Assembly (NCBI RefSeq): GCF_902713615.1
Contig: NC_052158.1
Coordinates: forward strand, 2,604,001-2,668,000
Direction: 5' to 3'
DNA length: 64,000 bases
Source of the DNA: Scyliorhinus canicula
Lineage: Eukaryota
The notes under the pieces were generated by a model. It was not told the DNA's origin and made no database searches. It saw only the letters and a program-made list of their open reading frames with translations. The translations under genes were made by a program, and so were the position numbers. Numbering within the stretch: the stretch's first letter is position 1; the number at the start of each line of letters is the position of its first letter. Below, in pieces: positions 34,061-35,759 of this stretch.

Positions 34061-35339
34061 CTATAGCCAACGAGGGATACAAAGATGTCAGTCAATGCCC
34101 CAGCAATTTCCTCCCTCAGTATTCAGGGGTAAATCCCATCTGGCCCAGGAGACGTATCTACCTTAATATCTTAACTACCAGGAGACTTATCTATCTTGCT
34201 ACTGTACCGTCCACCTTATGGACTGACCTGATTAATACTAAGCTCTATGCTCCACCCGATGCCAGTGTCTAGGTATTTACATTGTGTATCTGGTGTTGCC
34301 CAATGATGTATTTTCTTTTCATGTACCAAATGATCTGCTTGAGCTGCACACAGAAAAATACTTTACACTGTACCTCGGTACACGTGACAATAAACAAATC
34401 AAAACGGATCTGAAAATCCTCAACTTCCCTTTCCCGCATTAACCCCAAACCCCTTGATTCCCTTACTGATTAAAAGTCTGCCACCACATTGTGAGTCTGG
34501 AATCACATGCAGGCCCGACTGGTAGCTTTCCTTCCCTAAATGGACATTAGGGAACCAAGATGGGTGTTTACGATTGACAATGGTTCCATGGTCACCATTA
34601 GATAAATTCCAGATTTTTATTGAATTCGAATCTCCATCATTTGCCATGGTGGGGATTTGAACCCGGGTCCCCAGACCATTACCCTGGGACTCTGGATAAC
34701 AAGTGCAGCAATAACGCCACTACTCCTTTTGCCTCGCCACCCCCTCTGAATCTTCTAAATTCAGCGAATAAGGCCTTGGCGACCTAATCCCTCCTCACAT
34801 GACAATGCTGCCATCCCAGGAATCAGCCTGGCGAACCTTCCCTCATCCCCACTATGGTGGTCCAGGTGGCACCTCATCACGCCCATCCATCAAAGAGGCC
34901 GAAGAAAGTTTGCCAAAGGCAAATTCACCCCACAGGGCTGGGGGGGATCCCCAAGGAGTAAACGCTGGAAAATCTGTAGGGAGGGGAAAGAGCTAACGTT
35001 TCGAATCCAGATGGCCCTTTGTCATAGTTACGGTGAAGGAAGAGGCCATTCAGCCCATCGTGTCTGTGCCAGCCAAAGGACAGCCAGCCGATCAATTTAG
35101 TCCCACTTTCAGACACTGGGTCCTTCACAGTGACAATGCAGCAATATGTTTTTCCCACCCCCTCAGGAATAGCTGCGCAGTGCAAGTTTTGCACAGTTCA
35201 GAGGAATTTGCCAAGAGCAGTTTTTGATTCCCCCAATTTATTGACTTTATCAAGGTAGACAGGTGATCAGATGCAAATAATTCCCTTGAGTGGCAGCACA
35301 GGTGGGTCACAAAGAGAGGAGGGACTTCCGGTCTGTCAA

Positions 35340-35759
35340 TCAAACGAGGGACCTCCTCGATAGGCTGGTCCGCTTGACGTGACGTTTGTCGCCCCTCCCC
35401 CACTTCCGCTTCGGCGGGCCTTTCCTTCCGGTCCCGCTTCCTCCCGGCTTCCTCCGCTGCCTCGCGCAGTGGTCGCCGATTGGCTGCACCACCACGTGGC
35501 TGGACAGGGCCTTCCAGTCGATGTCCTGATGGGCCAACCGCGGCCGCTTGCGCGTCGGCCGCCGGGCCCTGCGGCTGCTCTTGAGGCTGCTCTTGCGGCT
35601 GCTCTTGCGGCTACTCTTGCGGCTGCTCTTGCGGCTGATGGCCAACGACGCGCTGAGGCCGGAGGGGCGGTGCCAGCTGGGCCAGAACCTGTGGATGGCT
35701 GTCGAGGCCTTGATCAGCGAGCGCAGCGGAGCTTTCGAGGACGGCGGGGTGACAACCAT
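35340..35759 (-). CDS. Candidate intronless small basic (K/R/S-rich) protein, 139 aa, unknown family
   Basis: Strong Kozak (gcatcATGg), mostly G/C third codon positions, in-frame 12-bp SRKS repeat and AATAAA on minus strand at 35237-35242; no homolog recognised. Confidence 0.5.
   Translation of the reverse strand: MVVTPPSSKAPLRSLIKASTAIHRFWPSWHRPSGLSASLAISRKSSRKSSRKSSRKSSLKSSRRARRPTRKRPRLAHQDIDWKALSSHVVVQPIGDHCARQRRKPGGSGTGRKGPPKRKWGRGDKRHVKRTSLSRRSLV

Follow-up and report, generated by a model that had tools for sequence, protein, structure and literature searches.

A probable intronless gene for a small, extremely basic protein, divergent from a TRIM gene in Scyliorhinus canicula and conserved in bamboo sharks

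We have analysed a stretch of 64,000 nucleotides of the Scyliorhinus canicula genome (RefSeq assembly GCF_902713615.1, contig NC_052158.1, positions 2,604,001 to 2,668,000; hereafter the window, in whose coordinates all positions are given) in which a first-pass annotation, made from the letters alone, had proposed an intronless gene on the minus strand, head-to-head with a TRIM gene. The most likely account of this open reading frame (ORF; 35340-35759, 139 codons plus TGA) is that it is a single-copy, intronless, transcribed gene for a small, extremely basic and mostly disordered protein that is conserved in bamboo sharks. That it is a real protein-coding gene we consider very probable. The best overall explanation of our data, to which we give a probability of roughly 0.6, is that this genuine gene encodes a nuclear, germ-cell-enriched polyanion-binding protein, nearer to the transition-protein or nucleolar type than to the protamines. 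The family is new in the sense that it has so far been represented by only one 'hypothetical protein' and one probably chimeric gene model.

A coding signal confined to the ORF

The ORF begins with an ATG at 35759 in a strong context (atcATGg, with A at -3 and G at +4) and ends with a TGA at 35342-35340, its start and its 139 codons being as the first-pass annotation had described them. The predicted product is 15.7 kDa with a net charge of +35 and a pI of at least 12. Direct counting bore out the reported imbalance of charged residues, in that there are 39 basic residues (24 arginines and 15 lysines) and 25 serines against four aspartates and no glutamate; expressed as percentages, serine makes up 18%, arginine 17.3%, lysine 10.8%, proline 8% and histidine 4% of the protein, which has a single cysteine. 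Its longest basic clusters are RRARR and RKRPR, and the sequence RKRPRL, previously pointed out as resembling a nuclear localisation signal (NLS), occupies residues 70-75. The frame-preserving 12-bp repeat encoding (SRKS)x4-SLKS is also where it should be, at 35570-35637 (5.7 copies with 92% matches in Tandem Repeats Finder), and is an in-frame microsatellite. Beyond it, the C-terminal tail (35343-35480) is rich in lysine, arginine and glycine and carries further NLS-like clusters; its composition has been kept and its sequence is poorly conserved.

The warning that CpG islands yield long ORFs by chance was justified as far as length is concerned. When the island was shuffled with dinucleotides preserved, 64% of the shuffles contained an ATG-initiated ORF of at least 139 codons, and when the ORF itself was shuffled 21% of the shuffles were open in the given frame; we have therefore discarded ORF length as evidence for a gene. 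The excess of G+C at the third codon position, on the other hand, is significant. The preponderance of G or C in third codon positions (GC3) noted earlier amounts to 0.89, with G+C at positions 1, 2 and 3 of the whole ORF being 0.51, 0.63 and 0.89, respectively; with the repeat removed the values are 0.57, 0.62 and 0.89, a spread matched by 0 of 2000 shuffles. The signal is spread along the ORF (GC3 of 0.90 in the N-terminal segment, 0.95 in the repeat and 0.88 in the C-terminal segment) and in a sliding window the excess at the third position begins at about 35780 and ceases at about 35340, the flanks being flat. No cryptic repeat with a period of 3n was found behind the GC3 signal, as Tandem Repeats Finder gave only the 12-mer and a short 10-mer.

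The plus strand opposite the gene and its promoter contains a 212-amino-acid antisense ORF (35379-36017, G+C at first codon positions 0.78). We do not regard it as a gene, since such a mirror frame is expected opposite a gene with high GC3 and it is interrupted in the bamboo-shark ortholog; it makes a handy example of a false ORF. The first-pass annotation had also cautioned that the 3′ part of the ORF contains motifs resembling ETS sites and cAMP response elements (CREs). These are indeed present, but we attach no regulatory meaning to them as they are missing from the ortholog and are accounted for by AAG, CGG and GGA codons.

An orthologous frame in bamboo sharks

An exhaustive phmmer search of 1.84 billion representative proteins returned a single match to the ORF product, GCC18885.1 (hypothetical protein chiPu_0021732 of Chiloscyllium punctatum, 133 amino acids, with an E-value of 5e-4 for the whole library), and the earlier statement that no homolog is recognised thus no longer applies. 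In a pairwise BLASTP comparison the two proteins align with an E-value of 8e-14 and 38% identity, the similarity being carried by two blocks that are not of low complexity and that share the motifs RS[LI]IKA[SA]TAIHRFWPS.H and RL.H..I.W..L..H.VVQP. Both blocks occur in the same order and in one frame in the ORF product and in the bamboo-shark proteins. Block 1 (codons 13-30, 35670-35723, minus strand, RSLIKASTAIHRFWPSWH) is 87% identical to the bamboo-shark locus over 45 nt at the DNA level and has accumulated six synonymous and five non-synonymous changes in 18 codons, giving a ratio of non-synonymous to synonymous rates (dN/dS) of about 0.16. For block 2 (codons 74-93, 35481-35540, minus strand, RLAHQDIDWKALSSHVVVQP) the ratio is about 0.5. 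Among the residues that are invariant in the three sequences available are H23, H30, H77, H88, W26, W82 and F25.

Several features of the bamboo-shark locus indicate that the frame itself has been maintained. The locus is collinear with the window over the TRIM B-box exon, a piece of TRIM intron, TRIM exon 1 and the ORF, and its CpG island is less G+C-rich. There the homologous frame alone is open, the other five frames having 3-9 stops each, and only 2.6% of shuffles remain open. Its GC3 periodicity (0.72-0.82) is likewise confined to the ORF. Furthermore, when frames were aligned in pairs the true frame scored 50 bits and any other pair at most 41 bits. What the first-pass annotation had named as grounds for abandoning the gene, namely frameshifts and a lack of codon-level constraint in orthologous DNA, is therefore not what we find: the C. 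punctatum frame is open and periodic in GC3, and the substitutions in block 1 point to constraint. The comparison also bears on the start codon. There is another ATG in frame at 35828; its context is weaker, and a start there would extend the protein by 23 residues to 162 amino acids. In the bamboo shark, in-frame stops lie 27 codons 5′ of the ATG with no in-frame ATG between, so that of the two starts 35759 is conserved and 35828 is not.

GCC18885.1 resembles the ORF product in being syntenic with it, head-to-head with the orthologous TRIM gene behind an array of CCAAT boxes, and in having the same two blocks and four histidines. Charge has been kept across the two species (+35 here and +39 in GCC18885.1), with acidic residues nearly nil in both. 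The proteins differ in that the (SRKS) repeat is absent from GCC18885.1, where it falls in an 18-residue gap, and in that the C-terminal tails cannot be aligned residue by residue. Overall, the 38% identity of the ORF product to its ortholog compares with 71% for the neighbouring TRIM B-box exon, which speaks for faster evolution. GCC18885.1 carries no functional annotation, and a canonical AATAAA was not found downstream of the C. punctatum ORF.

A second bamboo-shark protein, XP_043534336.1 of Chiloscyllium plagiosum (468 amino acids, 'heat shock 70 kDa protein-like'), is orthologous to the ORF over its residues 1-118. Its other residues correspond to the C-terminal half of the product of an HSP70 gene about 13 kb downstream; the gene model spans 13.4 kb and is probably chimeric.

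Other searches gave nothing further. A word-indexed protein search found no match to the ORF product, the same search with a profile of the three sequences found only GCC18885.1, and no further fusion models were found with residues 1-118 of XP_043534336.1. For the window protein Pfam contained no family at E-values up to 10; a sub-threshold match to SWT1_3rd (E 0.0048), obtained with the two bamboo-shark sequences only, was not credited. A profile search of PDB sequences (E up to 10) had no match, the ESM Atlas offered no usable neighbour and Rfam gave nothing credible over 34800-36500. No paralog was detected in the 4.2-Gb genome by DNA or profile (the best other match has an E-value of 0.78), an exact-sequence look-up of the ORF product in this genome's protein set was negative, and no paper on this gene was found in the literature.

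An unspliced transcript with its own 3′ end

To assess transcription we aligned to 33500-36800 the Logan contigs of three runs, each from a different study. All three runs contain a contig over the ORF: run X11 of study P4 (35231-35846, 616 nt, depth 12.7), run X6 of study P3 (35235-35765, 531 nt, depth 19.3) and run X4 of study P2 (35221-36189, 969 nt, depth 407.9). That these runs are RNA is evident from the splicing of their TRIM contigs, in which 36344 is joined to 40440 (the loose end after 36344 being 40440-40469). Each of the three ORF contigs terminates 2-16 nt downstream of an AATAAA polyadenylation signal on the minus strand (35237-35242), which lies 98 nt past the stop codon, in agreement with the roughly 100 nt given earlier. 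All follow the genomic sequence without a break, none having a joint that leads out of the ORF, and the gene is therefore intronless. Thus an RNA was found where the first-pass annotation would have given up the gene had there been none, and the unspliced polyadenylated transcript of about 0.6 kb that it had foreseen is matched by contigs of 531-969 nt ending after AATAAA, on what is, by inference, the minus strand.

The short form of the transcript is an unspliced mRNA (35221-35846, minus strand) with a 5′ untranslated region of at least 87 nt, the coding sequence and a 3′ untranslated region of about 110 nt. The stretch 35847-36189 represents either the extra 5′ part of a long isoform or upstream start sites, and is covered by the X4 contig and by a low-depth X6 contig at 35834-36011. 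The 5′ end of the X4 contig (36189) is 14 bp from the 5′ end of the TRIM transcript, which points to back-to-back divergent initiation. In X4 the depth falls to 4.8 just downstream of the ORF contig. TRIM contigs have depths of 11.6 (X4), 5.8 (X6) and 18.4 (X11), so that the ratio of ORF to TRIM is about 35-fold in X4 as compared with 0.7-fold in X11 and 3-fold in X6. Close by, at 33611-33943 and 34277-34498, all RNA runs show very high contig and read depth (up to about 6200) and numerous loose ends, which gives these stretches the appearance of interspersed repeats with many transcribed loci.

Apparent enrichment in a germ-cell-rich sample

The tissues of the runs are coded and we typed the runs by their content of TEX15, which is germ-cell-specific in mammals and for which we assumed the same in sharks. 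The TEX15 ortholog (Pfam PF15326; 260228466-260230211 on contig 3 of this genome) lies within a giant exon, an open frame of 2407 codons. Among the RNA-type runs it is best covered in X25 (0.96) and X4 (0.94), both from sample S4 of study P2, and it is in this same sample that the ORF contig is deepest (X4). Runs X14 and X3, with TEX15 contents of 0.64 and 0.42, contain the ORF stretch too. The transcript is not restricted to such samples: run X9 (sample S6, study P3) covers the ORF at 0.53 with TEX15 at 0.00, the ORF is also found in studies P4 and P5, which do not figure among those with TEX15, and altogether runs of six RNA-type studies contain it, TEX15-negative ones included. Runs of study P7 were excluded as expression evidence, as both test stretches reached at least 0.97 in them and they are probably DNA. 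Our reading, provided that TEX15 is specific and contig depth usable, is that the gene is expressed broadly at a low level and is strongly enriched in a sample rich in germ cells, probably testis. The suggestion that the gene is expressed in germ cells therefore holds in part, with the deepest contig coming from the TEX15-richest sample as indirect evidence for it and the TEX15-negative samples speaking against a restriction to germ cells.

A basic protein that is not a protamine

The first-pass annotation had likened the product to protamines and transition proteins (TPs). In protamines, arginine accounts for about half of the residues and occurs in poly-Arg tracts, and the proteins are about 30-65 residues long. 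The ORF product has 17.3% arginine and no poly-Arg tracts, and is 139 amino acids long, or 162 from the upstream ATG; the protamine (PF00260) and TP2 (PF01254) profiles gave no match at E-values up to 10. It is true that the protamines (PF00260, the fish protamines and the dogfish scylliorhinines) and the dogfish spermatid proteins S1 and S2 are likewise very basic, contain serine and evolve fast. However, the ORF product is two to four times longer than protamines and has conserved blocks with aromatic residues and histidines; no sperm protein, protamine, scylliorhinine or dogfish S1/S2 was returned by the exhaustive phmmer search. With arginine at 17% and the (SRKS) repeat missing from the ortholog, the ORF product is not a protamine. 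Regulation by phosphorylation of RKxS sites, proposed as a core feature, fares no better: the repeat is a lineage-specific microsatellite expansion, and sites of the form [RK][RK]x[ST] number six here as opposed to one in the bamboo-shark protein, so that phosphoregulation of this kind is not a feature of the family.

Mammalian TP2 is a closer comparison. It is of similar length and rich in serine, arginine, lysine, proline and histidine, with a basic C-terminal part that contains an NLS and with histidines that possibly bind zinc. The resemblance between our gene and TNP2 (PF01254) is one of workings only, lying in these features of TP2 together with the germ-cell-enriched RNA; the two share no sequence or profile similarity, and the ORF gene is set apart by being intronless, by encoding a single cysteine, by its CpG-island promoter and by its RNA outside germ-cell-rich samples. 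Looking specifically for a cysteine/histidine zinc part, we found four invariant histidines and a basic tail, and in the whole protein only the one cysteine. An AlphaFold2 model of the protein (mean predicted local distance difference test score, pLDDT, of 53; predicted template modelling score, pTM, of 0.12) is disordered save for two elements: in block 1 a helix at residues 14-24, which is predicted to be amphipathic, and in block 2 a short turn (82-85). The helix sequence AIHRFWPS bears a likeness to the IQ calmodulin-binding motif (PF00612), for which there was no profile match at E-values up to 10.

A working model and its alternatives

The data show a gene that is transcribed divergently from a CpG-island promoter of the NF-Y/CRE type common to it and a TRIM gene of the RING-B-box-PRY/SPRY type, giving an unspliced RNA of 0.6-1.0 kb that terminates 2-16 nt past AATAAA. 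On our favoured model its product, judging from composition, would be imported into the nucleus by way of its K/R clusters, and the disordered basic tail may bind DNA or RNA electrostatically, with selection acting on its composition and not its sequence. Through the two conserved blocks it could contact one particular partner, be it a protein, a metal or a nucleic acid; more speculatively, the contact might be made by a basic amphipathic helix like those targeted by calmodulin, or by a metal site composed of the four histidines. Action would be mainly in germ cells, and a chromatin-condensing or nucleolar role may be inferred.

Several considerations weigh against this model or parts of it. 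With regard to the gene itself, our call is built on DNA and RNA; the length of the ORF is unremarkable for a CpG island, and the ESM recognition score is low (1167). The orthologs come from just one other genus, Chiloscyllium, and the dN/dS of the whole alignment is about 0.5 with dS saturated. The sole alternative allele seen, in run X11 (CC>AG at 35419-35420 and C>T at 35443), changes two codons of the basic tail (G114L and G106E), both non-synonymously. With regard to the RNA, the abundant long contig of X4 would carry four upstream ATGs (36079, 36065, 35929 and 35842), of which that at 35842 also lies inside the 5′ untranslated region of the short isoform. The transcript strand was deduced from where the contigs end and from the poly(A) signal, the raw oligo-dT reads of run X20 that fall on the ORF (about five) being too few for a strand call. 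Contig depth in Logan is a rough measure of expression, and the tissue identity of the runs was deduced from TEX15 content alone. Finally, nuclear localisation and nucleic-acid binding have been read from composition.

One alternative is that divergent transcription from the promoter in the TRIM CpG island yields a non-coding RNA, the ORF being an untranslated by-product of G+C-rich sequence. The shuffles, the 212-amino-acid ORF on the opposite strand, the low ESM score and the upstream ATGs of the long isoform would all fit this idea, which we nonetheless consider improbable given that: (i) the GC3 periodicity is bounded by the ATG and the stop codon in two species; (ii) block 1 shows an excess of synonymous changes; (iii) the homologous frame alone is open in the ortholog, where G+C is lower; (iv) the antisense ORF is an expected mirror frame and is interrupted in that ortholog; and (v) the RNA forms a discrete and abundant species that has an AATAAA and a 3′ end to itself. 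It could also be imagined that the ORF serves as exon 1 of a larger, spliced gene fused to HSP70, for which XP_043534336.1 is a precedent and for which an HSP70 gene on the same strand 13 kb downstream (20264-22285) would supply the remainder. We find this scarcely credible, since each of the three RNA contigs matches the genome from end to end and stops at the poly(A) site with no joints out, the downstream HSP70 is a complete intronless ORF of 673 amino acids and the ORF of C. punctatum is closed by a stop codon of its own; the fusion was rejected for this genome on the contigs of X4, X6 and X11.

The remaining alternatives concern function. The narrower form of our model is that of a dedicated sperm or spermatid nuclear basic protein, a functional analogue of TP2 in selachians that replaces histones in spermiogenesis. 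A size and an S/R/K/P/H-rich composition near those of mammalian TP2, the virtual absence of acidic residues in both orthologs, the fast evolution (38% as against 71% for the TRIM exon), the top depth in the TEX15-richest sample and the invariance of the four histidines would agree with it. We nevertheless regard it as doubtful: the protamine, TP1 and TP2 profiles gave no match and 1.8 billion representatives yielded no sperm protein, arginine is just 17%, the RKxS repeat is not conserved, the transcript is found in TEX15-negative samples (X9 with TEX15 at 0.00, as well as studies P3, P4 and P5, in which the transcript is present), and the CpG-island NF-Y promoter common to TRIM is, to our knowledge, not of the usual spermatid-specific type. 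Equally open to doubt is the opposite possibility, that of a broadly expressed basic protein of the nucleolar or ribonucleoprotein type whose germ-cell signal reflects proliferation or promiscuous transcription in testis. Its appeal is that runs of six RNA-type studies, some of them TEX15-negative, contain the transcript, that the CpG-island promoter has CCAAT, ETS and CRE motifs and that the disordered tail is basic with clustered K/R. However, no similarity to a known nucleolar or ribosome-biogenesis family was found, lineage restriction and fast evolution are unusual among core ribonucleoprotein factors, and the ORF contig is about 35 times as deep as TRIM in X4 but 0.7 to 3 times as deep in X11 and X6. 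A true transition-protein role seems unlikely to us. In its most specific version, that of a chromatin transition protein peculiar to selachians, which evolved separately from mammalian TP1/TP2 and acts in the spermatid exchange of histones for protamines, the helix and a four-histidine (possibly zinc) module might dock on chromatin or on a partner, for example a product of the neighbouring HSP70 or TRIM genes, and the disordered K/R/S tail might neutralise DNA; we think it unlikely that this is what the protein does.

Returning to the polyanion-binding protein that we favour, the gene would be a lineage-restricted, fast-evolving, basic, germline-enriched orphan of a familiar kind and not a new kind of system. 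Its immediate significance is as an annotation gap, an expressed and conserved shark gene being absent from the protein set of this genome, called 'hypothetical' in C. punctatum and joined to HSP70 in C. plagiosum. It also illustrates the use of GC3 phase, the frame of the ortholog and RNA 3′ ends in distinguishing a small basic protein of restricted lineage from chance ORFs in CpG islands. If the germ-cell enrichment is true, the machinery of the histone-to-protamine transition in cartilaginous fish, of which little is known, would gain a new candidate, one whose conserved helix and four histidines are directly testable. If, on the other hand, the product is only a general nuclear basic protein, this is an ordinary orphan gene.

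Promoter, neighbouring genes and other features of the window

The head-to-head arrangement with a TRIM gene was confirmed. TRIM exon 1, which encodes the first half of the RING, lies on the plus strand from about 36203 (36203-36344, ATG at 36231) and is spliced to the B-box exon at 40440; the PRY/SPRY exon is at 51579-52049. Between the two genes, at 35793-36128, are nine CCAAT boxes of the NF-Y type, six of them in the sense of the ORF, together with five half-CREs (ACGTCA), in a promoter common to both. The CpG island has a G+C content of 0.63-0.67 and an observed/expected CpG ratio of 0.85-0.86. In the bamboo shark the intergenic promoter of about 430 bp contains 10 CCAAT boxes (at nine sites, one of which is palindromic), nearly all in the sense orientation. 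The earlier proposal that a promoter rich in CREs and CCAAT boxes would suit germ cells stands with respect to the boxes, but what they make up is a bidirectional CpG-island promoter of the NF-Y/CRE type; with the transcript present in TEX15-negative samples too, a spermatid-specific promoter is not supported.

The gene has the position that marks the family, head-to-head with a RING-B-box-SPRY TRIM gene, behind the CCAAT array and upstream of HSP70. The window contains two intact, intronless and nearly identical HSP70 genes on the minus strand, at 3834-5843 (669 amino acids) and 20264-22285; the latter is on the same strand as the ORF and 13 kb downstream of it, and the gene order is as in C. 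plagiosum. Promoter-like repeat modules without a gene are present at about 8905-9544, 25032-25672 and 63376-63795.

Two tandem repeats also produce ORFs. A 25-bp minisatellite at 10120-11201 (44 copies, 92% identity) gives a spurious ORF of 385 amino acids, and a 32-bp repeat at 50005-50687 (21 copies, 97% identity), situated in the last large intron of the TRIM gene and containing CCAAT, generates ORFs on both strands. Lastly, the plus strand carries at 15532-18015 an 827-amino-acid ORF resembling a retroelement Gag, with an internal triple repeat of 219 bp.

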